A stretch of 64,000 nt of DNA. It comes from Macrostomum hystrix. Lineage: Eukaryota; Animalia; Platyhelminthes. Made by a program: the position numbers and the translations under genes. Shown here in pieces: positions 19,415 through 54,782 of this stretch; within the stretch, counting starts at the first letter, position 1; the number at the start of each line of letters is the position of its first letter. The notes below the pieces were generated by a model. It did no database searches. It saw nothing but the letters and a program-made list of their open reading frames with translations, and was not told where the DNA came from. The stretch covers positions 248,001 to 312,000 of the forward strand of contig CATNEN010000007.1 in the NCBI GenBank assembly GCA_950097015.1. Reading direction: 5' to 3'.

Positions 19415-20110
19415 TCACCTCAAGGCCTGGGGATACACCACATTCTTCGTTCTTCCCCTTGGTGCGAAAATGAATAGGCCAGCTGGAGTTCCAACACGGG
19501 AGCAGGCGACATAAAGCTGCCCATGCAAGAAGCAAGGAGTCTCCAGGTTGATGCCAGCCACCTTCAGCGACTGTCCCTGAGCCTTATTAATAGTCATCGC
19601 AAAGCACACTCTCACAGGGAACTGCAGTCGCTTGAACTGAAATGGCAGGTCCGTGGGGATAATTGGAATCCAGGGAACGAACACAGACTCTCCTCTGCCA
19701 GATCCAGTCATTATCGTGGCCTCAATCACGTGTGGGAAGAGCCGCCTGACTATCAGTCTGGTGCCGTTACACAGCCTTGGCGCATTCAGGTTGCGGAGGA
19801 GCATAATTGGTGCCCCAACTTTCAGCTGCAAGTTGTGCGATGGAGTTCCAGGAGGATCTAGAGAGTTCAGAAACTCAACAGGATACTCCACAGCGGTGTC
19901 ATCAGTCAACGTTGTATCAATTGACTTGTAGGTGAAAACTGCACCTGGCAACTCCTGAAGCAGTTGGTAGTTAATTTCGTTGGTGGCATCATTTCTAGGA
20001 CACAGAATTGCCCTCTCTGACAGCCAGTCAACGTCAGCATATCGAGAGAAATAGGCTGGCTGGAGAGAAATATCGACCGGAGAGCCCTGCGCACTGGGAC
20101 GCCACCGCAC
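19415..20110 (-). pseudogene. Helitron Pif1-family helicase C-terminal fragment
   Basis: RAILCPRN, LQLKVGAPIMLLRNLNAPRLCNGTRL, FKRLQFPVRVCFAMTINKAQGQSL, HGQLYVACSRV, TKNVVY. The Rep domain and Walker A are absent. Confidence 0.9.
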
Positions 20111-28500: not shown

Positions 28501-31500
28501 TCATGCTGTCTCTTTGGCTCTGGCTGACTCATCTGCGATTACTAGCAGCCGTGATGTGGCCGAATTCATTGATCAGTACTGTTCACTAGTTACAAAATGG
28601 CTCAAGGCTGTCACAGAAAATGATTCCAAAAAGACACTCGAAGCAAACGCTTCGGAGTTCAATTTTGTCGTGAAGCAAATGCTGAGCTCTCCATTTGCAG
28701 AGAAATTCTCTTTGAAGGCAGGCGGTGGCATACTTATGTGCCGCCTCTCACTCTTCGTTCAACGCAGATTCGCTCCTGAAAACAAGTCATTTTGGAAACC
28801 CGAAGAGGCCACTCTGCTTCTGAGCTTCCTACAGAAACCGGCATTGAAAGGCGTCAGTTCTCAAGCTCTCCGCTTCCTGGACTCATCACTGCCTTCCTTC
28901 TTGTGTCTCTGCTACTGCGCCAAAGTGCTGCATCCTTCAAATTCAGCAAATGATTTTGCAAAACTGGTGAAGGATCTCGGTTTTGTTGAGCGAGGAGGTG
29001 ACAAGTTCAGGACTGAGTTTTCTACAGCTCTTCTCAACTCCGGCTTGCTGCGAAGTATCAGCTGCAGCAACTTCGCAAGCACTGTATCCGCTGTGTTCAA
29101 CGATGCAGAGGATTTCAATGATGCACACATATTATTGGAAGAATTTATTACTATTAAGGAGGATGCGGTTGAAATCCTGAGTTCATTTGACTCGTGTGAA
29201 ATTGTGAGTCCTGCACTGAAGCAGTTCATTCATAGATTTGGAGCATCAATACTTTACAAGAAGCACCTGAGTGATTTGCAGACGGAGAGCTGGCAGCGGT
29301 TCTGTGACATCATGCAGAAGGCAAAGAAGTTGCAGTGTGTGGATGAGTCTGTCTGGCACGATGAGGTGCTCCCTGTCATTCGAAGGGCCATTATTGCATC
29401 TGTAAGCAACAGTAAGTTTGAGAATGACAGCTCTGTTCCCAATCGGCAGGCTCTCTGCGATCTGTTAGGTGTAAAGGGTTTCCTTGACCCGACACTTGCT
29501 GTAGACTTCTTGAGTATCATATTTTCTTCAAAGACTCATTGGCTAATTAAATTTTGCCTTGAAAAATTTGCTGGCACTTTTCTTAATTCTTTACTAAATG
29601 CTAAACATGATTGTAAGATAAATATTATGTGTCAGTTTATTCGACTAAGCTGTGACTACTTTCACAAGTCTGTGTGTGCCACAATCGCACCACTGGTTCA
29701 AGATTCTTCATGCGATTCTTTCAAAGCACTTTGCAAAGAGTCTGCGCATCTTGTCCTAAATGAAAAGCCATTGACTAGAAGTATTATTGAGACCAACGTG
29801 GAAGACGGAATGGCTGCAGGTCTCAGTGATATTGTGTTTGAAGTGTGTTTGGTTAAGCTTCGCGACAATGAAGGCAACGAAAAGCAAAAGGAAGACATTT
29901 TGAAGTTTTTGCAACACCCGAACAGTTCGTTTAGTAAAGATAATCATTCAAGGTATGTTTCGAAACTATATTGCCTCATACCTCATTTAACAATTTAACG
30001 TAATTATTTTTTGTTTTTGACTGTTAATAAAATACATATTGACATTTACATTTGAGTTAAAAAGGCAAAATTGATTTACCAAGTTTTTTTAATGGCAGGT
30101 CTCTTTGCCGGCTGCTCGGTCTCAGCCTCGACAATTTCCTATCTGTGCAGTTTCGGCAGCGCCAGCCAAACGTCTTTGAGCTCCTACCAGCATTGCTAGA
30201 GAAGCATTTCATGTGGATGTGGATGACCAACCACTCCGATCAAGCCACTGAAGATCTTGCAGAGGACGTCCGTCAACGCATGTTTTCAAAATTAAAGTGC
30301 GTCGTTGACTTTGCCCGAATGCTGTTCGGTTTTGAGGCTGGAAAGGCTTTGTCTTTGACTGAATTGCATGAATTCGTCTCCATCTTCGATAAGCTTGATA
30401 AAAGCCGAAAATTGTCGCGTGAAAACTTCGAGTCAAATCTATTCGACTACTTCGATCTGCTTCTTGAAGCCTTCTTTGTGAACTTTCACCGTAATTCGCA
30501 GACCAAAGTGGTCGTTCAAATCATGCAGGAAAGTGAAAAGAAGTGGATTGAGCAGTCGGCAGTCGTGGATCAAATTTTTGAGTTTCTGTCTTTAATTTCT
30601 GGCAGCAACTCACCGCTGAATCTGAAGCTGCTGGATCTGGATGAAAAGCAGACTCGATACCGGTCCTTACAAAAGCAGTTTAATGATGCCGTCAGTTCTG
30701 TTGGACGCGACGATTTAGTGTTCCAGATTTTTGAGATCAGAAGCGTGCGGAACCTGGAGTTGATGAAGTCGCTGGTCAAATCTGAGTTGTTCAGAAGAGT
30801 GTTTGTCCGATGCAACCCTTCTTCTGGAGCCTCGAGAAATTCATTAGAGACTAAAAATGCTCGAGCCACAGTACAGACTACACCAGTAGCTCTGATGAGT
30901 GTTCAATGCAATTACTTTCTGGGCAAAATGATGCCAGAAGCATTTTCCGCGTACAAAGAGCTCCTTAAGTCAGGACTTACATTCGAGGAAGTTCTTGCGC
31001 TGTTTGGCTTTGGTTGCAGTACCATCTATGATCTCGAGGCCGAAAGAAACGCGACGGCATATGCAAAGTTGGCAGCTGAAGATATTTCGCGACTTTTCAG
31101 GGTAATTGTTTGATTATTTGCTTTTCCTGGCTCCATCGTTATTATTTTGCATGGTGGTTATTTTTTCGAACGTGCAGTTACTGAGACGAGAGTCGATGTA
31201 CTCTGCTGAAACTAAGTTGGGCACGTAATTGGAAGGATATAGTGTTTGCATACGAATGTATTCATGCCTGAGCACTATATTTATTTATAGGGCTACGCAA
31301 TGAAAATGCGATGAATGTACGCATCCTAAAAAGAAAAAAGCCTTTGGATTGGGTCAGTGTTCAAGACAAGAGTAGAACCATGAATTATAAACAATTTAGC
31401 TTTCTCTTCAAATTAATTGTTGAATTAGAGAATAAATATATCAACCACCTACGTCTATCCTCATAAAGCCACATTTGCCTACGCCATTGTCCACCTGGCA

Positions 31501-34500
31501 TGCCGATTTATAAATTTCTGACTGGATCCAGGTTGCTAACTTAAAAGTACTATTTCGCAAATGATCATGACCATTGGCAAATGATACGGCACTGGGCATG
31601 AGCGATAGTTCGATCTTAGCAGTTTAAAAAAGTCTAGAGGGTTTGAATGTTAGCAATAAGTTATGCAGTTTTGAATGATACTCACAGACAAATTAAATTG
31701 TAGAGCTATATGGAAGTAAGTTATGTGGTTTTTACACGGTTAGTGTGGCGAATTTTTTACCTCGTACAGTAAGATGATGAGTTGTCTTTAGAAACTCTAT
31801 AACACAATCGAGCATTATTCGAAATAATTTTTAATCTAGCCATTTAGATCTGTCCCTCTTGTCTTCGTGGTTAGTATCCACTTGATAATTCCAAACTGAG
31901 AAAAGTAGAAACAGGCGAATTCGAGCGAGGCACAATGTCTAATTTACCGTTTACAATGAAGTATTGCTATAGCGCAAAGTAATGAAATTGCAATCCGGAA
32001 AGACTTAGGCTATGTGTTCCAAGCAGCCAAAAGCATTCAAAACCCAGCTGATCGTGTTGACGATCAAAAACTAGTTTTTGCAATAGTGACCACGAATATT
32101 ATGTACAACATAAAATTATGACTTTGATCTACAGTAATTCATTGTTTTAACTTTTGAGTTGCATCACATTTTTAGGATTCATGGTTGACGCTAGACCAAT
32201 TTGTTGCTCTTGATAAGGACAATCAGCGTCTATACGTGAGTATATAAATCGAAATGTGTGTGGTATAATGCTATACTTAAATGTTATAACTTTACGCATC
32301 TACCTAATTAGTGCTTTAGACTAATATTTTGATGTCGCCCTTCTTCAGCCTAACGCTCCTGAGGGCGGTACCGGCTCCCAATGGATAGAACTGGGGAGAA
32401 CCGGGTTTCATCCCTCTGCACTACTCCACCTCTGAGGACATTGGTAGCTCTAGATGTGACATAGTGGTCACGATCATAGGGACCAATTAGGGGGAAAAGA
32501 CCAGGGTCGTGAGAAGGTAGGACCTGCTAGGCAGGGCTGCCACCAGCCACTTACGGGACAGCACAACCAACTGACCCTGACGAAACGGGGCTTCAGTTCT
32601 AAAAGAGAAGTGCTTTTGGCTCACCCCAAGGCCTATGGCCTGAAATAGGGATCCGATGTGTTAGACATGTGTTCACAGGGAGTTGACGTTCCAACAAGAG
32701 AGAGGACTTCTTAGGGATGCAGCTAAGAAAGAGGGCCCGACCCAAGGTTAAGAATGCCCGGATAGAGACAGCCTATAAGCTCTTACTAGGATTCAGTATT
32801 TACTCCTAAACACCAGTCTCCAGCAATGCAAGAGCAGGTTCAGGATCGGCTTCTATGTATCCTCGTGTGCAGGGACTACCTAACCCTAAGAATACATTAG
32901 AATTTCATTAGCATTACATTAGGCTCACATTAGGACATACTGTATTAATATGATGTACATTCGCGCTTGGATCTCAAGGCGACCAAGCCATCTATATATT
33001 ATCGATGGACTGATTAGTTCATGCTCTCATTCTTCGGCTCTGTGTGTTAGATTTGACTCATTCTGATCAGTTCATGCTCTCATTCTTCGGCTCTGTGTGT
33101 TAGATTTGACTCATTCTGGTCAGTTTATGCTCTCATTCTTCGGCTCTGTGTGTTAGATTTGACTCATTCTGATCAGTTCATGCTCTCATTCTTCGGCTCT
33201 GTGTGTTAGATTTGACTCATTCTGGTCAGTTTATGCTCTCATTCTTCGGCTCTGTGTGTTAGATTTGACTCATTCTGATCAGTTTATGCTCTCATTCTTC
33301 GGCTCTGTGTGTTAGATTTGACTCATTCTGGTCAGTTTATGCTCTCATTCTTCGGCTCTGTGTGTTAGATTTGACTCATTCTGGTCAGTTCATGCTCTCA
33401 TTCTTCGGCTCTGTGTGTTAGATTTGACTCATTTGAAACCTGTACCCCCTTAGGTGGCCTTCGAATTCCGTCTGTTCATCGCAGACATCGTCAAGTACAT
33501 TGTGGAACAGGTTTCTTCTGGAAGAAAAGGCATTGCTGATGACCAGCCCTTCATCAAAGATCTTACAAACTCATTGCTTGAAGCCAAAATCGACACAACA
33601 GTTTCACTCATGTTGGCAAACCAAATTTTAAGCATAACTTACAAAATCAGACGCAAGATAAATTCATTAAAAGAGTTCTACACACTTCCATCGTGGAATC
33701 TGTTTATCCCAAAGGAAAAAGTTGGAACCTTCCATTACAGCTATCAGTTGGAATGCCGACATCAATTGCTGCAAGTGGCAAGTATCAAACAAATACAAGA
33801 TCACATGAGGCGATTTGGTCCAGCTGTTTCTTCACAAATAGAGAGAGCTCTAAATAGTAGCTCTCGAATATCCGACACCATAGTTAAGTGTTGTTCGAAA
33901 AAGAACAGCGCGCCCCCAGATGGAACTGTGTGTGAGCTGCAGACTCGCACTCTAAGCAAAGACCGCCTCGTGTGTTTTGACGCTCTGATGGAGCCGTACA
34001 TCGATTCAGTAGTCGGAAAGTCTCAATTCTTCTGGCGAATTTTCGCTTCTCATGCTGTCTCTTTGGCTCTGGCTGACTCATCTGCGATTACTAGCAGCCG
34101 TGATGTGGCCGAATTCATTGATCAGTGCTACTGTTCGCTAGTTACAAAATGGCTCAAGGCTGTCACAGAAAATGATTCCAAAAATACACTCGAAGCAAAC
34201 GCTTCGGAGTTCAATTTTGTCGTGAAGCGAATTCTGAGCTCTCCATTCGCAGAGAAATTCTCTGCGAAGGCAGGCGGTGGCATACTTATGTGCCGCCTCT
34301 CACTCTTCGTTCAACGCAGATTCGCTCCTGAAAACAAGTCATTTTGGAAACCCGAAGAGGCCACTCTGCTTCTGAGCTTCCTACAGAAACCGGCATTGAA
34401 AGGCGTCAGTTCTCAAGCTCTCCGCTTCCTGGACTCATCACTGCCTTCCTTCTTGTGTCTCTGCTACTGCGCCAAAGTGCTGCATCCTTCAAATTCAGCA

Positions 34501-37385
34501 AATGATTTTGCAAAACTGGTGAAGGATCTCGGTTTTGTTGAGCGAGGAGGTGACAAGTTCAGGACTGAGTTTTCTACAGCTCTTCTCAACTCCGGCTTGC
34601 TGCGAAGTATCAGCTGCAGCAACTTCGCAAGCACTGTATCCGCTGTGTTCAACGATGCCGCCGTTTTCACTGATGCACAAAAATTGATTGAAGAATTTAT
34701 TACTATCAAGAAGGATGCGGTCGAAATCCTGAGCTCATTTGACTCGTGTGAAATTGTGAGTCCTTCACTAAAGCAATTCGTCCATAGCTTTGGAGCATCG
34801 ATACTTTACAAGAAGCACCTGAGTGATTTGCAGACGGAGTGCTGGCAGCGGTTCTGCGACATCATGCCGAAGGCAAAGAAGTTGCAGTGTGTGGATGAGT
34901 CTGTCTGGCACGATGAGGTGCTCCCTGTCATTCGAAGGGCCATAATTGCACCTGTAAGCAACAGTAAGTTTGAGAATGACAGCTCTGTTCCCAATCGGGA
35001 GGCTCTCTGCGATCTGTTAAATTTAAGGGGTTTGCTTGATACGAAACTTGCTGTAGACTTCTTGAGTATCATATTTTCTTCAAAGACTCATTGGCTAATT
35101 AAGTTTTGCCTTGAAAAATTTGCTGGCACCTTCCTTAATTCTTTACTAAATGCTAAAGATGATTGTAAGATGAATATATTCTGTCAGTTTATTCGACTAA
35201 GCTGTGACTACTTTCACAAGTCTGTGTGTTCCACAATCGCACCACTGGTTCAAGATTCTTCATGCGATTCTTTCAAAGCACTTTGCAAAGAATCTGCGCA
35301 TCTTGTCCTAAATGAAAAGCCATTGACTAGAAGTATTATTGAGACCAACGTGGAAGACGGAATGGCTGCAGGTCTCAGTGATATTGTGTTTGAAGTGTGT
35401 TTGGTTAAGCTTCGCGACAATGAAGGCAACGAAAAGCAAAAGGAAGACATTTTGAAGTTTTTGCAACACCCGAACAGTTCGTTTAGTAAAGATAATCATT
35501 CAAGGTATGTTTCGAAACTATATTGCCTCATACCTCATTTAACAATTTAACGTAATTATTTTTTGTTTTTGACTGTTAATAAAATACATATTGACATTTA
35601 CATTTGAGTTAAAAAGGCAAAATTGATTTACCAAGTTTTTTTAATGGCAGGTCTCTTTGCCAGCTGCTCGGTCTCAGCCTCGACAATTTCCTATCTGTGC
35701 AGTTTCGGCAGCGCCAGCCAAACGTCTTTGAGCTCCTACCAGCATTGCTAGAGAAGCATTTCATGTGGATGTGGATGACTAACCACTCAGATCCTGCCAC
35801 TGAAGCTCTTGCAGAGGACGTCCGTCAACGCATGTTTTCAAAATTAAAGTGCATTGTTGACTTTGCCCGAATGCTGTTCGGTTTTGAGGCTGGAAAGGCT
35901 TTGTCTTTGACTGAATTGCATGAATTCGTCTCCATCTTCGATAAGCTTGATAAAAGCCGAAAATTGTCGCGTGAAAACTTCGAGTCAAATCTATTCGACT
36001 ACTTCGATCTGCTTCTTGAAGCCTTCTTTGTTAACTTTCACCGTAATTCGCAGACCAAAGTGGTCGTTAAAATCATGCAGGAAAATGAAAAGAAGTGGAT
36101 TGAGCAGTCAGCAGTCGTGGATCAAATTTTTGAGTTTCTGTCTTTAATTTCTGGCAGCAACTCACCGTTGAATCTGAAGCTGCTGGATCTGGAAGAAAAG
36201 CAGGCTCGATACCGGTCCTTACAAAATCAGTTTAATGATGCCGTCAGTTCTGTCGGAACCGACGATTTAGTGTTCCAGATTTTTGAGATCAGAAACGTGC
36301 GGAACCTTGAGTTGATGAAGTCATTGGTAAAGTCTGAGTTGTTCAGAAGAGTTTTTGTCCGATTCAATCCGTCTACTGGTGGCTCGAGAAATTTATTTGA
36401 TACTGAAGTCCATCAATCTGCTGTACAAAAGAGACCTGGAGCTCTTATCAGTATTCAGTGCAACTATGTGCTTGACAAAATGTTGCCTGACGCTTGCGCC
36501 GCGTACAAAGAATTTTGGATTGCAGTGGAAGAAGGGAGCTTACAGTTAGAAAAGATTAAAGTATATATTTCAGACGAGTCAAAAATAGACTTATCACTGG
36601 AGCACGAAATTTTGTCCAACTTAGCCATATCTAGCACCGTTGTTGCAAAACTTTACAGTGTCCAGTTACATAAAATGTGGCGTAGCCGGGTCGAAGTGCT
36701 TCAGTTCTTTCTCACTGAGTTCTTTGATCTCAATGCAGCTTCGACCAACTCGCCTGAAAACTCATATGCCTCAGCTGATGATACCGTGTCTGATGACGAA
36801 AATACAGAGAAAGCGTCAGGTTTCTGTACTGAAGCTCTTACAAACCACGAGGATGCAACTGCATTAATCGAAGAGTTTTTGAGTCTCTGCGAGCGCACAA
36901 CCCTACTCAGCGAATACCTGGAAGTTTTTAACGATGTGTCTGGTGCTTTTGGTTGTGTAGATTCGAATGTATGGGAAGTGCTGGCCATTATGTATGAGAG
37001 TAGACAGGAGACTCTACCTTTTCTGAGAGAGCAGCAGTCATCAGACTTTCAACAGTTGCTTGATAACACGGACGATACGATTGCACAAGATCTAAGCCTA
37101 TCTGTAATCAATTCATTGATTTCGCTACAACAAGCCCTTCGAAGCTTTTTGTCATCAGGACCGAAAGTTTCTGTAAAAGAAATAGAAGAATCAGTTCTGC
37201 TGTCACTGAAGTACTTCGTGGCTGCGGATGGAGAAGTTAATATTCAAAATGAAGTCGGCGAGCGACAGAAAGCTGCTAAGAACCTGATTGATCGTATTAA
37301 GGAATGTAGCAGTCACATAAACTCGATCAAGACTCTTCATGCTAGTATGGGTTCTCGTGGTGAGACATCTAAAATTCTTACGTAG
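21846..37385 (+). CDS. Giant multi-exon RNF213-like N-terminal/stalk protein with triplicated module (~3,540 codons, 5' incomplete)
   Basis: Exons 21846-22278, 22373-22544, 23357-23413, 23573-25587, 25979-26972, 27284-27343, 27905-29952, 30099-31101, 32176-32235, 33454-35504, 35651-37385. All GT-AG with compatible phases, 10,628 nt plus 1 upstream base. Stalk-like motifs AYKEFWIAVEEGSLQLEKIKVYI, LETGAITISQAK and INSIKTLHASMGSRGETSK. Start exon not found. Confidence 0.65.
23357..26972 (+). CDS. Module A (57-nt micro-exon + 2015-nt + 994-nt exons)
   Basis: SWLLEEEYAKLSQTAQSSY | VAFEFRLFCADIV... | ...FVYKIFAICLEKLV...LLFP; a diverged paralog of modules B and C. Confidence 0.8.
27284..31101 (+). 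CDS. Module B (60-nt + 2048-nt + 1003-nt exons)
   Basis: VSWLTMEDYLKLDERCKSLY | IPFDFRLFIADIV... | ...SLCRLLGLSLDNF...RLFR; phases 0/2/0. Confidence 0.85.
32176..37385 (+). CDS. Module C (60-nt + 2051-nt + 1735-nt exons)
   Basis: DSWLTLDQFVALDKDNQRLY | VAFEFRLFIADIV... | extended last exon ending GETSKILT*. Near-identical to B over the large exon, the 146-nt intron and the start of the last exon. Confidence 0.85.
33012..33433. repeat. 53-bp minisatellite abutting the module C acceptor
   Basis: Unit gatcagttcatgctctcattcttcggctctgtgtgttagatttgactcattct, about 8 copies. Confidence 0.95.
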
Positions 37386-39518: not shown

Positions 39519-41122
39519 TCAAGCTGTCCTTTGGTCATCGATAATGTTGGCGCAGACATCCACCACCGACTTGTAGCTCCGGATGCTGCCCTCGGCGAGC
39601 GGCTGTCCAACGTCTGTCACCTGCCAGCCCCCTCTGCGACTCGGCCGACTGAGTAGACAGACAACCAGGCCTTTGGCGCGCGGGTGCAGATTGGTGCTGC
39701 ACAATGGCTCATGTGGATTCCGCTGGTCGAATACCTTGATGGGTTGAAATATTAGGGCGATTGTGTTGGACATAGCAAGTGATGAGTACAAAGTAGGCAA
39801 GGCAAAATACTACTTAACTATCGATTACATCGAATTACAATACAAATTACTCGTATAGCCAGACATAAATCATCCGATCACTAGCGAGATCCCAACAATA
39901 CATCCCATCTAATCACAAGCGAGATCCCAACAATACATCCCATCCAATCACGAGCGAGAACCCAACAATACATCCCATCCAATCACGAGCGAGAACCCAA
40001 TAATACATTCCATCCAATCACGAGCGAGATCCCGAAAATTCGTTAATTCAATTAAATCAATCAATAAACAAAAACTGACCTGCAGTTGAGGGTTGCGAAA
40101 TCTGGCAATATCGGTGTCGCGAAACGTGAAGATAACAAAGAACAGGTGAGTCACCGGCACCAAGGGTCCTCTAGGTCCTCTAATTTTGCCAGCCGGGGCT
40201 TTCAACCCGTCCAGCTTCTGCGGCCACACGGTGAAGGACGACTCCGAGGTCCTTGTAGACATTGACTTCCTAGCATCTCCGTCGTGCCTGACAACCTCGT
40301 CGTAGATGCGGCTGATGGCGGCTCCGATCTCGTGGCGGCCCTGCTGACGCTGGGTGCGGAAGTCGATGCAGTGCAGAAACTGCGGCGGCCCGACTCCGCC
40401 AGCGTGGAAGGTGAAGCAGGCCGTGTCCAGGTAGTCGGTGTGGTCCTTGCCACCTGGCCAGCCCCAGGACATGCACATGCGCACCTCGGTGAGATCCGGA
40501 GTCAGCTCCTGCAGCACGAACAGCACCTGCACCCGGCAACCGTTGCTAAGGCCTGCCGATTGAAGACGCTGGCTGTCCTGGAGCATTCAAGAAATTTGGC
40601 TTCACTCACAACTGAGAGTTAGCCCTCCTATTCACATTGCTAGTCAATTGTGGGGTTCTACCATAGACAGGAACACTGTAGATTGGTTATTACACTATTT
40701 ATAAAATAAAGAAATGCTAATGCTGGCACTCAATTCTCAATGCTGCTAGTGAACTGAAGCGACGGCAAATCAAGTGTCTTGCTCAATGGTACAATTGTTT
40801 TTTATTCGAGCTCCGGACCTCCGGTTGAGAAATCGAAAGCTCAAACCACTGGACTAAAACTCACCACCAGCTCCTCGCCATTGAAGAGCAGTTTAATCTT
40901 ATTCCTGCTGTGATCTTTCCAGTGCTGCAGGACCTGATCCTTCAGCTTGTCCACTGTGTCTGAACAGACCAACTCAACGCTGACAGTCTCACCCAGCAAG
41001 GTGGTGAGGTTCAACTTCACCTTTCCGTTGGAAGCTGTGGAAAGACGAAGTGAAAATATTGAAGCCTCAGGTGTTAATGGTTTGAGCAGTTGCTAACAGA
41101 TGATAAAGAGTTTCGGCCTCAC

Positions 41123-41153
<31 letters not shown>

Positions 41154-43019
41154 GCTAGCCTTCTCACGCTCCGAGTAGTCAAAGGTGAGCTGCTTCAGTT
41201 TGGCCTTGCATTCCCACAGACCCACACAGGTGGCTGGATCTATCATGATGCTGCAGTCAGTAACCGGACATTTGTAATTGTTCTCAACTTCTCTGATGAC
41301 ACACTGCAGACCAGGAGTGATATACAATTGTAAGGTAACAGTGATTTGCTCACTTTCTACAACTGCATTTGCACAACTTAGGTATCAACTGAACCTTCTG
41401 CACTTCAATGGGCTAACCCTGACTTTAACAGACTAACCCAGAAAATGCAGTTGGCAGTTGCAAAACCACAGAATACACCAGAATGCTAAATCAAGCTCCC
41501 TGCGAAATTTTTTTAGGCAAAAACTATTCGCTAGCTACGCTACTTCTAAGGTGAAGTGATTTGTGAGTAGTGCTGTCTGTTTTACATCAACCCGAGTGTA
41601 TTGAGATCGATTTTGCCATAGACGATGTTTTTCGCTTGTCCTCCCGTCCATCTATCTTATCTATTTGATGCCTAGTGTGTAATAACTCAGTTTAGTTGCC
41701 TGTGAGTATCATGGTCTCAGCTTTCACAAAGGTTGGCAGTTCAGTTTGAGATCACTAAAGGCTGTGTCTATGCAAATGCTTTCCAGTGGAGACTGCAAAT
41801 CCGTGTTGTCCAGAAATCTTACTCAAGGTCACGTTGAAAATGGCTTTGCGTGCATCCGACGACGAGGCGGCTTCAATGACTGTCCTGAGTACAAAGAAGC
41901 TGCTGCGGCATTCCGCTCACTGGCTGTCAACCAGTTACTTGGCTGCCCATCGTTTGCTAACAACTGCAAACCCGACAGTTCAGTTCCCATGTTAACCGAT
42001 CTCATTCAGCCAATCACCGATGAAATCAAAGCGGATTGTGAGAAGTTCCCTATCAGTTCCGTTGACGAGAATGCGTGTCTGGCATTGACACAAGCCTGTC
42101 TAGGAATATTTGGAGAAAAGTGTGCCTCTGTTGGAGGTTGGATGCTTCATTGCTTGTTGCGGTTGCGCACCGGACTGCAAAATTGGTCTTCTGATTCGCG
42201 ATGGTTGCAATGAGGGCATGCGTTTACTGGAAAAGAATATGCGAAACACTGAAGATGGCGGTCTGCACGTACCAAGTGAAGCGGTCTTGAAATCAGTGCC
42301 AACGATGGAGATGGTTTTCGACCAGATTTGCAATGTGCAGGACTCGATTAGTGTATGGAAGGGAATCGATATCAGTGCCCGAGTCCAGCCTGCAGCACAA
42401 ACAGCTGCTACAACTGAGCTACATCTACACAACAGAGAGCACACAAAGGAATGGCTTTCATCTCTCATCTTTGAGCACACGCCTGCGTTTACATCACTGG
42501 TGCAAAGCTCAACAGATATTACTTCGAGCTGCCAGGAAGCGCCGAGCTCACAGTACGAGTACAGATTCAGCAGAACAACGAAAGCTGCGACGCCTGTCAT
42601 CCGCTAAAGTATAGGATGCCTGTTGTTTGAGGCTTAAACTGCTGCTCATACTGCTGCTTTAAAAACGGTTCTAGTTTTCAATTTTCGCTACAGCTGCAAA
42701 TATACAATCGGGACCTTCTGTCCATAAAAATGTGACTACTTCTCAAATTTCAGTACTGCTTATCACTTCTTCACCTCAGATACACCATGCATCATTGGCT
42801 ACCAGGAGTAGTGTCTATGGTTTTATATTCGGCTTTTGATTTGGAAGCTGATTGAGCATTCTGGTGTATTCTGTGTGCAAAAGCTAAAAGTTTGGCTTCA
42901 AAAGAGTCGGAACTCACACGGAGGCAAACGAGCAGGTGGTGATGTTCGCAAGCCTCATCGAGCGGATTAGACGGGTACTCTGAGGTGAGCTTCTTCTTGT
43001 GGCACAATTTACACTCCAT
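39519..43019 (-). CDS. RING (C3HC4) - ubiquitin-like - TerD-like protein, copy 1
   Basis: Exons 43019-42918, 41303-41123, 41034-40865, 40577-40080, 39734-39519; phases 0/1/0/0. RING is CKLC...CEH...VCLRC...KCPVTDC; UBL is KVKLNLTTLLGETVSVELVCSDTVDKLKDQV...KLLFNGEELVDSQRLQSAGL; TerD-like is MSWGWP..DYLDTACF..RHDGD..VTHLFFVIF..VVCLLSR..WQVTDVG. The last acceptor is a less common AAG. Confidence 0.8.
39885..40035. repeat. 35-bp minisatellite in the last intron of copy 1
   Basis: Unit gcgagatcccaacaatacatcccatccaatcacga, about 4 copies. Confidence 0.85.
41467..42875 (+). mobile_element. P-element/THAP9-like transposon remnant
   Basis: Perfect 21-bp TIR cacagaatacaccagaatgct; TSD tgcaaaac / tgcaaaag. 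Frameshifted transposase C-terminus: LTQGHVENGFACIRRRGGFNDCP, GGLHVPS, RLRLHHWCK. Absent from the paralogous intron near 49557-49580. Confidence 0.9.
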
Positions 43020-43049
43020 GCTGATGAGAACAGCTGGAAAAGTACAGTG

Positions 43050-44300
43050 AGAGATTCTTGGCTGCAATTTTTTTCAGATTCTTGGCTACCAAGGGGTGAG
43101 ATTCTTGGCTACCAAGGGGGTGAGATTCTTGGCTACCAAGGGTGAGATTCTTGGCTACCAAGGGGGTGAGATTCTTGGCTACGAAAGGTAAGATTCTTGG
43201 CTACCAAGGGGGTGAGATTCTTGTCTACCAAGGGGGTGAGATTCTTGGCTACCAAGGGTGAGATTCTTGGCTACCAAGGGGGTGAGATTCTTGGCTACGA
43301 AAGGTAAGATTCTTGGCTACCAAGGGGGTGAGATTCTTGGCTACCAAGGGGGTGAGATTCTTGGCTACCAAGGGGGTGAGATTCTTGGCTACCAAGGGGG
43401 TGAGATTCTTGGCTACCAAGGGTGAGATTCTTGGCTACCAAGGGGGTGAGATTCTTGGCTACGAAAGGTGAGATTCTTGGCTACCAAGGGTGAGATTCTT
43501 GGCTACCAAAGGTGAGATTCTTGGCTACCAAGGGGGTGAGATTCTTGGCTACCAAGGGGGTGAGATTCTTGGCTACGAAAGGTAAGATTCTTGGCTACCA
43601 AGGGGGTGAGATTCTTGGCTACCAAGGGGGTGAGATTCTTGGCTACGAAAGGTAAGATTCTTGGCTACCAAGGGGGTGAGATTCTTGGCTACCAAGGGGG
43701 TGAGATTCTTGGCTACGAAAGGTAAGATTCTTGGCTACCAAGGGGGTGAGATTCTTGGCTACCAAGGGGGTGAGATTCTTGGCTACGAAAGGTAAGATTC
43801 TTGGCTACCAAGGGGGTGAGATTCTTGGCTACCAAGGGGGTGAGATTCTTGGCTACGAAAGGTAAGATTCTTGGCTACCAAGGGGGTGAGATTCTTGGCT
43901 ACCAAGGGGGTGAGATTCTTGGCTACCAAGGGTGAGATTCTTGGCTACCAAGGGTGAGATTCTTGGCTACCAAGGGTGAGATTCTTGGCTACGAAAGGTG
44001 AGATTCTTGGCTACCAAGGGTGAGATTCTTGGCTACCAAGGGGGTAAGATTCTTGGCTAACAAGGTTGAGATTCTTGGCTACCAAGGGTGAGATTCTTGG
44101 CTACCAAGGGTGAGATTCTTGGCTACCAAGGGGGAGAGATTCTTGGCTACCAAGGGTGAGATTCTTGGCTACCAAGGGTGAGATTCTTGGCTACCAAGGG
44201 TGAGATTCTTGGCTACCAAGGGTGAGATTCTTGGCTACCAAGGGGGTGAGATTCTTGGCTACCAATGGGGTGAGATTCTTGGCTACGAAAGGTGAGATTG
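43050..44300. repeat. 21-23-bp minisatellite upstream of RING-UBL-TerD copy 1
   Basis: Unit ggtgagattcttggctaccaa(gg)g with variant ctacgaaaggtaag. Confidence 0.95.
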
Positions 44301-44717
44301 TAGAGGAAAAAAAGAGTGTCGTAATTCAATAATATTAAATATTTTAGTTTATTTGCAAATTATCAAAATTCATTTAATTCTGTAATATCGTAATCCTGTG
44401 TTGAAACGAATCCATGGCGAAACAATAAAGTTGATTTTAGAGCAGGAATCATTGAAGTCATCATCTTATTGACATCTATTGACAGTCGAGAAAGAAATTG
44501 AAATGATATACATCTAGCTTGTAAGCAAAACACCGGTAATCAAGAATCCATGAAGATAACTGAAAATGTTTTATCAATAACAAGAGTATAAATAATAAAT
44601 CCTAGGGTGACAAACGTTTAAATGTCAAATTATTATTCTGAGCAAGACAAGTTGGTTTGGGATCAAATTAAATATGCGCTAATATGTGAATAATTAACAA
44701 AAACCTACGACGTCGAA

Positions 44718-46615
44718 AAAGTAACTAGTCTATCATCAGAAATGGCAACTAGTCTATCATCAGAAATGGCAACTAGTCTATCATCAGAAATGGCAACTAG
44801 TCTATCATCAGAAATGGCAACTAGTCTATCATCAGAAATGGCAACTAGTCTATCATCAGAAATGGCAACTAGTCTATCATCAGACATGGCAACTAGTCTA
44901 TCATCAGAAATGGCAACTAGTCTATCATCAGAAATGGCAACTAGTCTATCATCAGAAATGGCAACTAGTCTATCATCAGACATGGCAACTAGTCTATCAT
45001 CAGAAATGGCAACTAGTCTATCATCAGAAATGGCAACTAGTCTATCATCAGAAATGGCAACTAGTCTATCATCAGAAATGGCAACTAGTCTATCATCAGA
45101 CATGGCAACTAGTCTATCATCAGAAATGGCAACTAGTCTATCATCAGAAATGGCAACTAGTCTATCATCAGAAATGGCAACTAGTCTATCATCAGACATG
45201 GCAACTAGTCTATCATCAGAAATGGCAACTAGTCTATCATCAGAAATGGCAACTAGTCTATCATCAGACATGGCAACTAGTCTATCATCAGAAATGGCAA
45301 CTAGTCTATCATCAGACATGGCAACTAGTCTATCATCAGAAATGGCAACTAGTCTATCATCAGAAATGGCAACTAGTCTATCATCAGAAATGGCAACTAG
45401 TCTATCATCAGAAATGGCAACTAGTCTATCATCAGAAATGGCAACTAGTCTATCATCAGAAATGGCAACTAGTCTATCATCAGACATGGCAACTAGTCTA
45501 TCATCAGAAATGGCAACTAGTCTATCATCAGAAATGGCAACTAGTCTATCATCAGAAATGGCAACTAGTCTATCATCAGAAATGGCAACTAGTCTATCAT
45601 CAGACATGGCAACTAGTCTATCATCAGAAATGGCAACTAGTCTATCATCAGACATGGCAACTAGTCTATCATCAGAAATGGCAACTAGTCTATCATCAGA
45701 AATGGCAACTAGTCTATCATCAGACATGGCAACTAGTCTATCATCAGAAATGGCAACTAGTCTATCATCAGACATGGCAACTAGTCTATCATCAGAAATG
45801 GCAACTAGTCTATCATCAGAAATGGCAACTAGTCTATCATCAGACATGGCAACTAGTCTATCATCAGAAATGGCAACTAGTCTATCATCAGAAATGGCAA
45901 CTAGTCTATCATCAGAAATGGCAACTAGTCTATCATCAGAAATGGCAACTAGTCTATCATCAGAAATGGCAACTAGTCTATCATCAGACATGGCAACTAG
46001 TCTATCATCAGAAATGGCAACTAGTCTATCATCAGAAATGGCAACTAGTCTATCATCAGACATGGCAACTAGTCTATCATCAGAAATGGCAACTAGTCTA
46101 TCATCAGAAATGGCAACTAGTCTATCATCAGAAATGGCAACTAGTCTATCATCAGACATGGCAACTAGTCTATCATCAGAAATGGCAACTAGTCTATCAT
46201 CAGAAATGGCAACTAGTCTATCATCAGACATGGCAACTAGTCTATCATCAGAAATGGCAACTAGTCTATCATCAGAAATGGCAACTAGTCTATCATCAGA
46301 AATGGCAACTAGTCTATCATCAGAAATGGCAACTAGTCTATCATCAGACATGGCAACTAGTCTATCATCAGAAATGGCAACTAGTCTATCAACAGAAATG
46401 GCAACTAGTCTATCATCAGAAATGGCAACTAGTCTATCACCAGAAATGGCAACTAGTCTATCATCAGAAATGGCAACTAGTCTATCATCAGAAATGGCAA
46501 CTAGTCTATCATCAGAAATGGCAACTAGTCTATCATCAGAAATGGCAACTAGTCTATCATCAGAAATGGCAACTAGTCTATCATCAGAAATGGCAACTAG
46601 TCTATCATCAGAAAC
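44718..46615. repeat. 24-bp minisatellite
   Basis: Unit aactagtctatcatcaga(a/c)atggc, about 79 copies. Confidence 0.97.
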
Positions 46616-46699
46616 GGCTGCTATTTAACACTAAGAGTAGGAGATTGTAAAAAATAACAGGCCACACACAGGCGCTGCTATATGAAGGTACATGTCAGT

Positions 46700-48685
46700 T
46701 CAAGAACGCCTAGCAACGTCGATAATGTTGCGGCAAATCTGCACCACCGATGCGTAGTTGCGAATGCTGCCAGTTGCCAGCGGCTTGCCGACGTCAGTGA
46801 CCTGCCAGGTGTCGCGCCTACCCGGCCGGCTCAGCAGGCAGACAATGAGACCCTTGGCTTGCGAATGCAGGGCGGTGCTGCAGAGCGGAGTTTGCGGGTC
46901 CCGCTGGTCAAATACCTGCATTGGAACGGCATTAGCGATTGCGCAATCTATAAGCACAAGGAAATAGAATGCCGATATGCGACCAAAAGGGCCGAAATGG
47001 CGTGCAAATAAATAGCTATAAATAAAGCAGATTTTATTTATCGCGAGACTATGGAGTGGAATTCGAGGACATTGGAGCCGATTTCATAAATCATGGAGCC
47101 GATTTCATAAATCATGGAGCCGGTTTCATAAATCATGGAGCCGATTTCATAAATCATGGAGCCGATTTCATAAATCATGGAGCCGATTTCATAAATCATG
47201 GAGCCGATTTCATAAATCATGGAGCGGATAGTATACATAATGGAACGAATTCGATATGTTATGGAGCAGATATGATATGTCATGGAGCAGATATGATATG
47301 TCATGGAGCAGATATGATATGTCATGGAGCAGATATGATATGTCATGGAGCAGATATGATTTTTTATGGAGCAGATATGATATGTCACGGAGCAGATATG
47401 ATATGTCACGGAGCAGATATGATATGTCATGGAGCAGATATGATATGGTATGATGTAGATTCAATTTATTACTCGGTGGACTTGAGCTCCAATGAAGTAC
47501 TCGTATTTAAAAAAAATAATTGAAAAGTTTTGTGACTTTTGTGACGATAAGAATTTTTGGCATTACAGATTTTAAAGCCCATGGGAACACGCACTGGGAT
47601 AGATAAATTATTTCAGAGAAACTATGAGACTAAACAAACTCACGTGCAGCTGTGGCTTTTTAAATATAGCAATATTTGTGTCCCGATAAGTGAAGACAAC
47701 AAAGAATAGGTGGGTGACCGGCAGCATACAGCCAGGTGTTTCTTCTCTTCGGCGAGCCGGAGCCGCCCGCAAACTGCCCAGATTCTGCGGCCACACGGTG
47801 AAGGACGACTCCGAGGTTCTGGTTGCCGCGCACTTTCTAGCGCCGCCGTCGTGCCTCACAACATTTTTATAGGTCTGGCAGATCTCGGCGCTGATGGCAT
47901 TTTGGCGTTGGCTGCTGCGGAAGTCGATGCAGTGCAGAAACTCCACACCACCAGTCTGGTCGGCGTGGAAGGTGAAGCAGGCCGTGTCCAGGTAGTCGGT
48001 GTGGTCCTTGCCACCTGGCCAGCCCCAGGACATGCACATGCGCACCTCGGTGAGATCCGGAGTCAGCTCCTGCAGCACGAACAGCACCTGCACCCGGCAA
48101 CCGTTGCTAAGGCCCGCCGATTGAAGACGCTGGCTGTCCTGGAGCATTCAAGAAATTTGGCTTCACTCACAACTGAGAGTTAGCCCTCCTATTCACATTG
48201 CTAGTCAATTGTGGGGTTCTACCATAGACAGGAACACTGTAGATTGGTTATTACACTATTTATAAAATAAAGAAATGCTAATGCTGGCACTCAATTCTCA
48301 ATGCTGCTAGTGAACTGAAGCGACGGCAAATCAAGTGTTTTGCTCAATGGTACAATTGTTTTTGATTCGAGCTCCGGACCTCCGGTTGAGAAATCGAAAG
48401 CTCAAACCACACTGGACTAAAACTCACCACCAGCTCCTCGCCATTGAAGAGCAGTTTAATCTTATTCCTGCTGTGATCTTTCCAGTGCAGCAGCACCTGA
48501 TCCTTCAGCTTGTCCACTGTGTCTGAACAGACCAACTCAACGCTGACAGTCTCACCCAGCAAGGTGGTGAGGTTCACCTTCACCTTTCCGTTGGAAGCTG
48601 TGGAAAGACGAAGTGAAAATATTGAAGCCTCAGGTGTTAATGGTTTGAGCAGTTGCTAACAGATGATAAAGAGTTTCGGCCTCAC

Positions 48686-48716
<31 letters not shown>

Positions 48717-49698
48717 GTTAGCCTTCTCACGATCCGAGTAGTCAAAGGTGAGCTGCTTCAGTTTGGCCTTGCATTCCCACAGACCCACACAGGTGGCTGG
48801 ATCTATCATGATGCTGCAGTCAGTAACCGGACATTTGTAATTGTTCTCAACTTCTCTGATGACACACTGCAGACCAGGAGTGGTATACAATTGTAAGGTA
48901 ACAGTGATTTGCTCACTTTCTACAACTGCATTTGCACAACTTAGGTATCAACTGAACCTTCTGCACTTCAGTTGGCGAACTCTTTGTTCTATAGTGCGCT
49001 AACTCTCTGTACATCAGTGGGCTAACTCTCTGTACATCAGTGGGCTAACTCTCTGTACATCAGTGGGCTAACTCTCTGTACATCAGTGGCCTAACCCTGA
49101 AACTTTAGTGGCGAACACTGAAAGGCTGAAACTTAAACGGACTAACCCTAAAAATGAAAGGCGGTCTGTGGCAGAGCGGTTATCGCGTTTGCCTCTCGCA
49201 CCAAGGTCCCTAAGTTCGATTCCACGGCGAGGCCACATTTATTTGGGGCGCAGCCGCGGAGAGAAGGCTTGAGGGCTTGTCGTGCAATTTACGCCCTTGT
49301 GGACCAACCTCCAAGGCACAGTGAAATTTACACTGCGTGACGATGAGAAAGTCAGGGCAGATGTACACACCTGTGTGAGCGTATGCCTGCGTACAGTATC
49401 TGTGTGCATGTGTGTTCAGGAGTCAGCGAAATGGGCAGAATTGCCTCCTCGCTGGCTGCGGGTCTAGAGTCACTAAATGATGTGCCATTGCCCGCAGCCT
49501 CCTGCAATTATTAATTATTATTGTTATTAATAACCCTAAAAATGCAGTTCGCAGTTGCAAAACCTATAACTTTGGCTTCAAAGAGTCGGAACTCACACGG
49601 AGGCAAACGAGCAGGTGGTGATGTTCGCAAGCCTCAACGAGCGGATTAGACGGGTACTCTGAGGTGAGCTTCTTCTTGTGGCACAATTTACACTCCAT
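46700..49698 (-). CDS. RING (C3HC4) - ubiquitin-like - TerD-like protein, copy 2
   Basis: Exons 49698-49597, 48866-48686, 48597-48428, 48138-47644, 46915-46700. Same intron positions and phases as copy 1, all canonical GT-AG. Confidence 0.82.
47062..47450. repeat. Two related 21-bp minisatellites in the last intron of copy 2
   Basis: atcatggagccgatttcataa repeats followed by gatatgtcatggagcagatat repeats. Confidence 0.9.
48995..49095. repeat. 23-bp short tandem array
   Basis: gggctaactctctgtacatcagt, about 4 copies; absent from the paralogous intron of copy 1. Confidence 0.85.
49157..49530 (+). mobile_element. tRNA-derived SINE, copy 3
   Basis: Perfect 14-bp TSD taaccctaaaaatg at 49143-49156 and 49531-49544; A and B boxes; TTA-rich tail. 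Confidence 0.9.
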
Positions 49699-49769: not shown

Positions 49770-50545
49770 GGGGTGAGATTCGTGGCTATCGTCGGGATGA
49801 GAGTCGTGGCTACCATGGGGGGTGAGATTCGTGGCTATCGTTGGGATGAGAGTCGTGGCTACCATGGGGGGTGAGATTCGTGGCTATCGTTGGGATGAGA
49901 GTCGTGGCTATCATGGGGGTGAGATTCGTGGCTATCGTTGGGGTGAGAGTCATGGCTATCATGGGGGTGAGATTCGTGGCTATCGTTGGGGTGAGATTCG
50001 TGGCTATCGTTGGGGTGAGAGTCGTGGCTATCATGGGGGTGAGATTCGTGGCTATCGTTGGGGTGAGAGTCGTGGCTATCATGGGGGTGAGATTCGTGGC
50101 TATCGTTGGGGTGAGAGTCGTGGCTATCATGGGGGTGAGATTCGTGGCTATCGTTGGGGTGAGAGTCGTGGCTATCATGGGGGTGAGATTCGTGGCTATC
50201 GTTGGGGTGAGAGTCATGGCTATCATGGGGGTGAGATTCGTGGCTATCGTTGGGGTGAGATTCGTGGCTATCGTTGGGGTGAGAGTCGTGGCTATCATGG
50301 GGGTGAGATTCGTGGCTATCATTGGGGTGAGAGTCGTGGCTATCATGGGGGTGAGATTCGTGGCTATCATTGGGGTGAGAGTCGTGGCTATAATGGGGGT
50401 GAGATTCGTGGCTATCATTGGGGTGAGAGTCGTGGCTATAATGGGGGTGAGATTCGTGGCTATCATTGGGGTGAGAGAGATTCGTGGCTATCATAGGGGT
50501 GAGATTCGTGGCTATCATGGGGTGAGATTCGTGGCTATCATGTGA
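49770..50545. repeat. 24/25-bp minisatellite with ~49-bp alternation, upstream of copy 2
   Basis: ggtgagattcgtggctatcgttgg alternates with ggtgagagtcgtggctatcatggg. Confidence 0.95.
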
Positions 50546-51029
50546 TGAGATTCTCGGCTAATAAGGGGTCAGTTTCGTGATTTCATTTTATTTAAATTTA
50601 ATATTTTGAAAACGATTAGTCTTTAACAAGCAGTAAACCTTACTTAAATAATAAACTTAAAAACGAGAAAATACACAAATACTGTATTTCTGCTTGCAAG
50701 CGTCAGTCAAGTGCTCTAGCGTATATACAATTTATTATCAACTTATTGAAATCTAACATCTAATGACGGTCGAGAGAAAAAAGAATCATCCGCAATGAGC
50801 TTAAGCAAAACACAGGTAACAAAAACAGATGGAGACAGCCGATATAAAAGTTAACAATAATATAAAAACTGGGTAACAGAATGACAACCAAAACCTAATA
50901 GAGTGATAGCGATTATATAAAAAAACTTGTCATGTTGTAGTGCTTAAATTTTATCGCTTGAAAATCCGCCTTTCTTAAAATTTGCTCAGTGCGGAAGATT
51001 AAGCAGGCCGCGTCAAATGTGATTGACAC

Positions 51030-54329: not shown

Positions 54330-54782
54330 CACTCACCACAGCTGGATGCGGAAGCAGGGATAGTCTCTGCCACCGTGAGTAGTCAAAGGTGAGCTGCTTA
54401 AGCTTAACCATTTTCACAGGCTAAGCCTGACACTCGGGTCGATCTTGACGCCCCCAGTCGTCCATTGGTTTTAAAAAGACTTGATGAAACCCTGAAAAGA
54501 AATATAGATAAAAAATATCTTTCTCCATTTACGACTCTTATCCTGCGACATAAAAGCCGCAGGCCTCTTCAAGCTTCCTTTTCTTCCCGAGATTTTTAAT
54601 TTCGATACATATAGGCTATTATTCAACCATAAGCTTACACGCAAGCAGACTAGCAGACGATGATGATGCTCGAACAGGTCTGAAACCAGATTGGACGAAT
54701 ACTCAGATCTCAGCTTCCTTCGGTAACACAGTTGATCAAGCGGATCAGAATGCCGCTCTGATGGACAGCAGTTAATGGTCAT
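54330..54782 (-). pseudogene. Third, degenerate RING-UBL-TerD paralog (first two exons)
   Basis: LDQLCYRRKLRSEYSSNL...FEHHHRLLVCLR|gt matches exon 1 with two Cys lost. KIDP...KLKQLTFDYSR matches exon 2 but is split by a frameshift or stop. Confidence 0.65.

Follow-up and report, generated by a model that had tools for sequence, protein, structure and literature searches.

TerD is among the most widespread stress and phage-defence domains of bacteria, and what it binds and how it works are still debated. Bacterial proteins of the TerD/TerZ/TerE type, including TerD from Klebsiella (2kxt/2kxv), 3ibz and SCO6318 (2qz7), adopt a beta-sandwich fold and are stand-alone products of operons that also encode TerB, TerC and TelA. 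The domain has been proposed to bind derivatives of nucleosides or nucleotides and to act as a sensor for them, and it has been linked with vWA proteins in bacterial systems (Aravind group; PMC7159879, PMC7824862). Here, we describe two tandem genes of the flatworm Macrostomum hystrix in which a TerD domain is instead the C-terminal module of a eukaryotic multidomain protein, preceded by a RING finger and a ubiquitin-like (UBL) domain. Both genes lie in a stretch of 64,000 nucleotides (contig CATNEN010000007.1, positions 248,001 to 312,000; hereafter the window, whose numbering is used throughout). The Macrostomum domain has in common with its bacterial counterparts the beta-sandwich fold, homology over the whole domain and the W, LD, H-x-G and W..G landmarks, but it lacks the acidic loop, carries an insertion of 16 residues and sits on a very long branch.

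Among eukaryotic proteins, ligases of the Parkin/HOIL-1 type likewise combine a RING-type finger and an integral UBL domain in one chain, and the UBL domain of Parkin regulates the ligase in cis. However, the proteins encoded in the window have no IBR, RING2 or catalytic Cys module, their RING finger precedes the UBL domain, reversing the order, and TerD replaces the substrate- or ubiquitin-binding modules; indeed, structural matches to Parkin cover the UBL domain only. TerD is also joined to ubiquitin-transfer machinery in a UBC(E2)-TerD-F-box architecture of Ascomycota, seen here as an ESM Atlas cluster, although in this case the partners are an E2 core and an F-box and not a RING finger and a UBL domain. 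Proteins alike in domain order, zinc ligands and a 'KLSxEFP' motif are found among unnamed database entries (M. lignano BOX15_Mlig002613g1 and Mlig001571g3, Haliotis LOC124258731, Rhizophagus clarus RclHR1_02740004, and a Potamilus protein). The window genes are orthologues of two M. lignano genes, with N-terminal halves that are homogenised in M. hystrix.

From the comparisons presented below, each of the two genes rather probably encodes a soluble single-chain RING E3 ubiquitin ligase, in which TerD would be a sensor or target-binding module and the UBL domain would have a docking or cis-regulatory role.

Two tandem five-exon genes encode the three-domain proteins

The gene models rebuilt from the sequence comprise two tandem five-exon genes on the minus strand, copy A (39519-43019) and copy B (46700-49698), with intact frames of 388 and 387 aa, respectively, and GT..AG ends at all eight introns. 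Their exons are as follows.

42918-43019, minus strand: copy A exon 1, start codon and RING ligands 1-5 (C3, C6, C24, H26, C32)
41123-41303, minus strand: copy A exon 2, RING ligands 6-8 (C35, C46, C51), long helix and poly-Ala run
40865-41034, minus strand: copy A exon 3, first two thirds of the UBL domain
40080-40577, minus strand: copy A exon 4, end of the UBL domain (~26 codons), then the first two thirds of TerD
39519-39734, minus strand: copy A exon 5, C-terminal third of TerD, terminal helix and stop codon (39519-39521)
49597-49698, minus strand: copy B exon 1, 99% nt identity to copy A exon 1
48686-48866, minus strand: copy B exon 2, 98.9% nt identity to copy A exon 2
48428-48597, minus strand: copy B exon 3, 98.2% nt identity to copy A exon 3
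47644-48138, minus strand: copy B exon 4, one codon shorter than in copy A; first 180 nt ~98% identical, the rest ~70%
46700-46915, minus strand: copy B exon 5 (including the stop codon), 69% nt identity to copy A exon 5

In both copies, the domain order is RING, Ala-rich helical linker, UBL and TerD, and no single open reading frame (ORF) spans the three-domain protein. An earlier note on this DNA had predicted a protein of about 390 aa, spliced from five exons and not visible as one ORF, with a C3HC4 finger split between exons 1 and 2 and a poly-Ala linker. The rebuilt models agree with this description in length, in frame and in the distribution of the ligands (five in exon 1 and three in exon 2), and an 8-Ala run is present between the RING finger and the UBL domain. 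A chance chain of exons is excluded, since two M. lignano proteins, P0002 with 388 aa and P0003 with 389 aa, share 72-78% identity with both models and are collinear with them; together with a third M. lignano entry, P0001, they are the only close proteins of the window genes.

Copy A is transcribed, spliced and trans-spliced

Contigs from four public runs, whose run type is not on record, were aligned to copy A only. The joint 41303|42918, which removes intron 1, is present in contigs of three runs (X1, X2 and X5) belonging to two studies, and the joints 40577|40865 (intron 3) and 39734|40080 (intron 4) are likewise found base-exact in contigs. The joints carry CT..AC ends on the plus strand, corresponding to GT..AG on the gene strand. 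Contigs break near intron 2, beside a GCT repeat, and a loose contig end at 41035 runs into the last bases of exon 2, fitting the intron 2 joint 41034|41123. At the other end of the gene, the contigs of X1, X2 and X5 extend beyond 43034 by 21-22 letters, which, once reverse-complemented, correspond to the 3' part of the M. lignano spliced leader, a sequence of 35 nt (PMC8629364). The mRNA of copy A is trans-spliced to this leader ~14 nt upstream of the start codon, which adds one feature to the gene.

43020-43035, minus strand: copy A 5' untranslated region (~14 nt) and trans-splice acceptor AG (43035-43034), with a loose contig end at 43034

The copy A contigs are RNA-derived. The exons are co-spliced, as the earlier note had supposed, and since the mRNA is also trans-spliced, the genes are resident in the genome and do not represent contamination, in line with the same note. 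The spliced leader itself ends in ATG, located 14 nt upstream of the ATG of copy A and out of frame with it, which would open a short overlapping upstream ORF.

For copy B, words were sampled from the diverged 3' part of the gene (46700-48138, 49% exonic), and 35-46% of them occur in runs of the study that provided the spliced contigs of copy A. This share fits expression of copy B, short of proof.

The N-terminal zinc finger resembles RING E3 ligases at the family level

Sixteen family N-termini from flatworms, molluscs and fungi were aligned, and the eight zinc ligands proved invariant in all of them (C4, C7, C25, H27, C33, C36, C47 and C52 in P0003 numbering). They follow the pattern C-x2-C-x17-C-x-H-x5-C-x2-C-x(9-20)-C-x(2-4)-C, and the 'KLSxEFP' motif is conserved between ligands 2 and 3. 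When the family RING profile was compared with the PDB, all of the top 14 matches were RING E3s (RNF4, BMI1, COP1, PCGF), with weak E-values, the best of which came from RNF4 (3.3e-5 as a tandem construct, 0.009 as a single RING). Pfam RING families each match at most 6 of the 16 N-termini, with zf-RING_2 found in 6/16 and zf-C3HC4 reaching E 4.4e-6 at best. A phmmer search of the N-terminus against PDB sequences returned only PHD and YY1 matches, at E 0.5-1. The invariance of the ligands and the profile matches to RING E3s at the family level support the C3HC4 assignment of the earlier note.

The structure of P0003 was modelled with AlphaFold (AF2) from a 48-sequence alignment, giving a mean predicted local distance difference test (pLDDT) of 89.1 and a predicted template modelling score of 0.71; this model was used instead of the single-sequence one, whose pLDDT was 34. 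The RING region of the model (pLDDT 86-96) contains short strands and a helix after ligands 5 and 6, and a further helix, 61-94, forms part of the linker. The C-P-x3-C ending of the finger had raised the idea of an RBR-type RING1, which was dropped: a single zinc finger is followed by a helix and the UBL domain, with no IBR, RING2 or catalytic Cys.

The central domain has a ubiquitin fold and no Gly-Gly end

Residues 99-175 of the P0003 model superpose on ubiquitin, ISG15 and SUMO over ~75 residues (Z 13-14, root-mean-square deviation 1.0-1.5 Å; Foldseek and VIA). In addition, the Pfam ubiquitin family PF00240 matches the ORF of copy A exon 3 at E 2e-5, just below the gathering score, and is precomputed on both P0002 and P0003. 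The ubiquitin-like domain proposed in the earlier note is therefore borne out by both family match and fold. No C-terminal Gly-Gly was found, and the domain passes directly into TerD (...VLFVLQELTPDL...), which identifies it as an integral domain and not as a conjugatable modifier.

The C-terminal domain is a divergent TerD

An exhaustive phmmer search with the C-terminal part of P0003 (P0003:170-389) against 1.84 billion representatives returned 44 proteins at E <=1e-3, with a best E-value of 8e-11; leaving aside the query's own group, 43 matches remain, of which 39 have a Pfam TerD domain and 20 a ubiquitin domain. The family C-terminal profile matched solved structures over nearly the whole domain, namely 3ibz (E 1.4e-9) and Klebsiella TerD 2kxt (E 6e-9). 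At the level of structure, the top match of the model among 48,161 PDB representatives was 2qz7_B, the TerD homologue SCO6318 (Z 14.8, 163/169 residues aligned, model positions 176-383), and the comparison with 2kxt gave a Z of 12.6. Direct phmmer searches of the TerD part against PDB sequences yielded chance matches only (thiolase, E 0.018). The TerD-like domain of the earlier note is thus backed by transitive homology, by profile matches to solved TerD structures and by a clear fold match.

A conserved and unstudied eukaryotic family

The M. lignano contig NIVC01000475 holds a tandem pair with a P0002-type (B-type) gene upstream and a P0003-type (A-type) gene downstream. Since the tandem order is the same as in M. 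hystrix, the duplication predates the split of the two Macrostomum lineages. The remaining close entry, the UniRef sequence P0001 from M. lignano, is a mis-spliced P0002-like model that skips the helical linker and translates part of exon 4 (residues ~115-150) out of frame. The three-domain architecture is also present in a third M. lignano paralogue group (P0004), in molluscs (Mytilus edulis, Haliotis rubra, H. asinina and Potamilus streckersoni), in six genera of Glomeromycota, in one EukProt (protist) transcriptome and in unnamed transcriptome and metagenome contigs. P0006, from the freshwater mussel P. streckersoni, is the sole homologue with a fused VWA domain, placed ahead of the RING finger (VWA-RING-UBL-TerD), which recalls the link between TerD and vWA proteins in bacterial systems. 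Furthermore, an 81-member, mostly mollusc 'TerD/Ubiquitin' cluster of the ESM Atlas matches the whole model (template modelling scores 0.59/0.66). Word-based homologue searches retrieved only the M. lignano proteins and one Mytilus protein, and the exhaustive HMMER search was needed for the rest.

A quick TerD tree places the Macrostomum sequences in a single clade with a very long stem, and Glomeromycota and molluscs each group together; TerD is fast-evolving in Macrostomum. The tree, made as a check for horizontal gene transfer, includes too few bacterial sequences to root it or to date a transfer, and it fits vertical descent with losses as well as transfers.

Family members are labelled only as 'hypothetical' or 'ubiquitin-like domain-containing'. 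Our literature search found no paper on the architecture or on any member and no mention of the M. lignano gene identifiers; a prior in-silico mention in the 2012 survey of Ter systems (Anantharaman, Iyer, Aravind) is possible. RING-UBL-TerD proteins thus constitute a conserved, unstudied eukaryotic family, which is not peculiar to the M. hystrix genome and is already in databases without a name. This is consistent with the earlier note, which knew of no functional study and had anticipated that similar fusions might exist in databases, now found in M. lignano, molluscs, Glomeromycota and a protist transcriptome.

Homogenised N-terminal halves and diverged TerD domains

The two copies are mosaics at the nucleotide level. 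Copies A and B show 98-100% identity in their first three exons, in introns 2 and 3 (100% and 99.3%, respectively) and over the initial 180 nt of exon 4, whereas exon 5 and the remainder of exon 4 are only ~70% identical. At the protein level, the N-terminal halves are 97% identical and most of TerD is 63% identical. The TerD domain of copy A is nearest to P0003 (78%), and that of copy B is nearest to P0002 (68%). A conversion tract was delimited in copy A.

40398-41420, minus strand: gene-conversion tract of copy A, with its counterpart in copy B at ~47960-48983

This tract spans the second half of the RING finger, the linker, the UBL domain and the first 35 residues of TerD, together with the introns. 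Gene conversion thus homogenises the RING and ubiquitin-like halves, while two old, diverged TerD lineages persist. Such a mosaic is the pattern expected if TerD carries a functional difference between the paralogues.

Proposed function and alternative explanations

If these proteins are ligases, the RING finger would recruit a charged E2, and TerD would be the specificity module, binding a ligand or a target protein and setting when or on what ubiquitin is placed. The UBL domain, in turn, may tether the ligase to the proteasome or other ubiquitin receptors, or regulate the RING finger in cis. An E3 function is favoured because the zinc ligands stay the same across a very broad range of taxa, and because TerD has been paired repeatedly and independently with ubiquitin-transfer domains in eukaryotes. 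A sensor role for TerD is favoured by the published proposal that, in bacterial conflict systems, the domain recognises signals of nucleoside or nucleotide type. RING-UBL-TerD proteins show no sign of membrane association, a caveat to the membrane-sensing option raised in the earlier note.

Nevertheless, several observations weigh against this proposal. Regarding the finger, the spacing between His and the following Cys is 5 instead of the usual 2-3, and the last pair is separated by x4 in Macrostomum. Pfam RING models gave no match on Macrostomum N-termini, and the Macrostomum sequences taken alone gave nothing significant. The lists of structural matches to the P0003 model are dominated by ubiquitin-like and TerD domains. 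Moreover, two positions, a hydrophobic one lying between Cys 1 and Cys 2 and the basic 'linchpin' that follows the last Cys, vary within the family alignment, and canonical E2 engagement is therefore not assured. Regarding TerD, the Pfam model (PF02342) matched neither P0001 nor exons 4 and 5, even at E up to 10. The missing Pfam matches for RING and TerD reflect the divergence of the Macrostomum clade and not the absence of the domains. In addition, the acidic run GEGDGDDE of solved TerD structures aligns to 'nkrGHH' (within 'sgdvmdsankrGHH') in the family consensus, and at the acidic-loop position Macrostomum has RHDG-x-(S/A)RK followed by a Ser/Thr/Arg-rich sequence and the 16-residue insertion, with no acidic run. 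The HSGD...GHH signature is kept by mollusc and fungal members and lost in the Macrostomum clade. The bacterial TerD ligand site thus appears not to be preserved.

The variable E2-contact and linchpin positions and the silence of Pfam RING models on the Macrostomum N-terminus would also be explained by a non-catalytic adaptor, in which the zinc finger is a protein-interaction module and the protein works as a shuttle of the ubiquilin or BAG type, with the UBL domain docking to the proteasome or another receptor and TerD bringing cargo or ligand. A UBL domain without Gly-Gly, an integral domain of the docking type, fits such a role. By eye, hydrophobic residues are kept at the positions of the L8/I44/V70 patch of ubiquitin, which is a lead and not a test. 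However, eight zinc ligands are invariant across flatworms, molluscs and fungi, the best RING profile matches are active RING E3s, and the joining of TerD to E2 and F-box domains in Ascomycota points to ubiquitin transfer over shuttling. We therefore regard an adaptor as unlikely, though, as the main rival, it has to be taken seriously.

A more elaborate version of the ligase proposal is tentative, and we would give it a low probability: TerD might be the receptor for a small nucleoside- or nucleotide-derived signal or a metal, along the lines suggested for bacterial Ter conflict systems, ligand binding might switch on RING-dependent ubiquitination, and the proteins might act as innate-defence or stress sensors of animals and fungi, built around a sensor module of bacterial type, with the diverged TerD lineages serving different ligands.

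It is similarly doubtful, and if anything slightly more so, that the proteins are calcium-regulated ligases whose TerD domain retains calcium binding of the Klebsiella TerD type, so that calcium would switch the E3 on or off. The fold does match 2kxt, an entry titled as a calcium-binding TerD, and D203, D224 and H250 (P0003 numbering) show little or no variation throughout the family. However, the acidic loop (GDN..GEGDGDDE), which is associated with Ca2+ binding, has been substituted in the family and is no longer present in Macrostomum, and one Asp of the D-x-D-L-D motif is deleted in the family profile relative to solved TerD structures. A Ca2+ site of the bacterial type is probably not kept, as far as alignments can tell.

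Finally, although most proteins of the Pfam TerD family are bacterial and no single long ORF exists, it is scarcely credible that the genes are an artefact, be it pseudogenes, a chance exon chain, bacterial contamination or a recent transfer, given the intact frames of both copies, the exact spliced contigs with spliced leader, the synteny and architecture conserved in M. lignano and the taxon-wise clades of the TerD tree.

Repeats, relics and neighbouring genes

Minisatellites occupy the space between and upstream of both genes and are the source of long repeat 'ORFs'. The following features accompany the gene pair.

43076-44299, no strand: 23/24-bp minisatellite directly upstream of copy A
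44723-46618: 24-bp minisatellite
47073-47447: 21-bp minisatellite
49770-50560: 24-bp minisatellite upstream of copy B, with units related to those of the array upstream of copy A
39871-40033: 35-bp minisatellite, part of copy A intron 4
54639-54734, minus strand: exon-1-like relic (tblastn E 2e-6 to 6e-6)

The presence of a related array upstream of copy B indicates that the upstream 23/24-bp minisatellite belongs to the duplicated unit. The relic at 54639-54734, located 5 kb upstream of copy B, has no ATG and lacks two of the five ligands, namely one Cys of the first pair and ligand 3 (Phe in place of Cys), but it keeps the GT donor. No further exons were found near it, and it is probably the remnant of a lost third tandem copy.

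Intron 1 of copy A (1.6 kb, compared with 730 nt in copy B) contains a 155-aa ORF at 41746-42213 (plus strand), within 41704-42242. A separate X5 contig covers this ORF at a depth of ~40, and no Pfam match was found on it; it is probably a transcribed fragment of an inserted mobile element.

Very long ORFs flank the gene pair at 23357-37385 (plus strand) and 59176-63996 (minus strand). They have been called RNF213-like, and Pfam gave no match on three of them; if the label is right, the RING-UBL-TerD pair would sit in a cluster of large genes of the ubiquitin-ligase or immune type. Another ORF, at 19415-20110 (minus strand), encodes a Pif1 helicase 2B domain (Pfam E 2e-19) and is possibly part of a Helitron-like element or of a Pif1 gene. 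None of the components of a ter operon context (TerB, TerC, TelA, vWA or biosynthetic genes) was found around copies A and B, whose neighbours are repeats and large genes.

Implications for TerD biology and for the family

The RING-UBL-TerD architecture is an unstudied variant of the RING E3 architecture, whose E3 activity is predicted from sequence comparisons. The loss of the acidic TerD loop in Macrostomum, the fast evolution of its TerD domain and the homogenisation of the N-terminal halves alongside diverged TerD halves are described here for the first time. The contrast between a homogenised, putatively catalytic half and a diverged TerD half points to TerD as the specificity part of the protein. 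The patchy range of the family, with members in Macrostomum, molluscs, Glomeromycota and a protist, bears on how domains of bacterial conflict systems entered eukaryotic ubiquitin signalling. With TerD wired to a RING finger and a ubiquitin-like domain, ubiquitination would provide a readable output for whatever TerD senses, and the family is present in a tractable flatworm, M. lignano, for which RNA interference and transgenesis are available.

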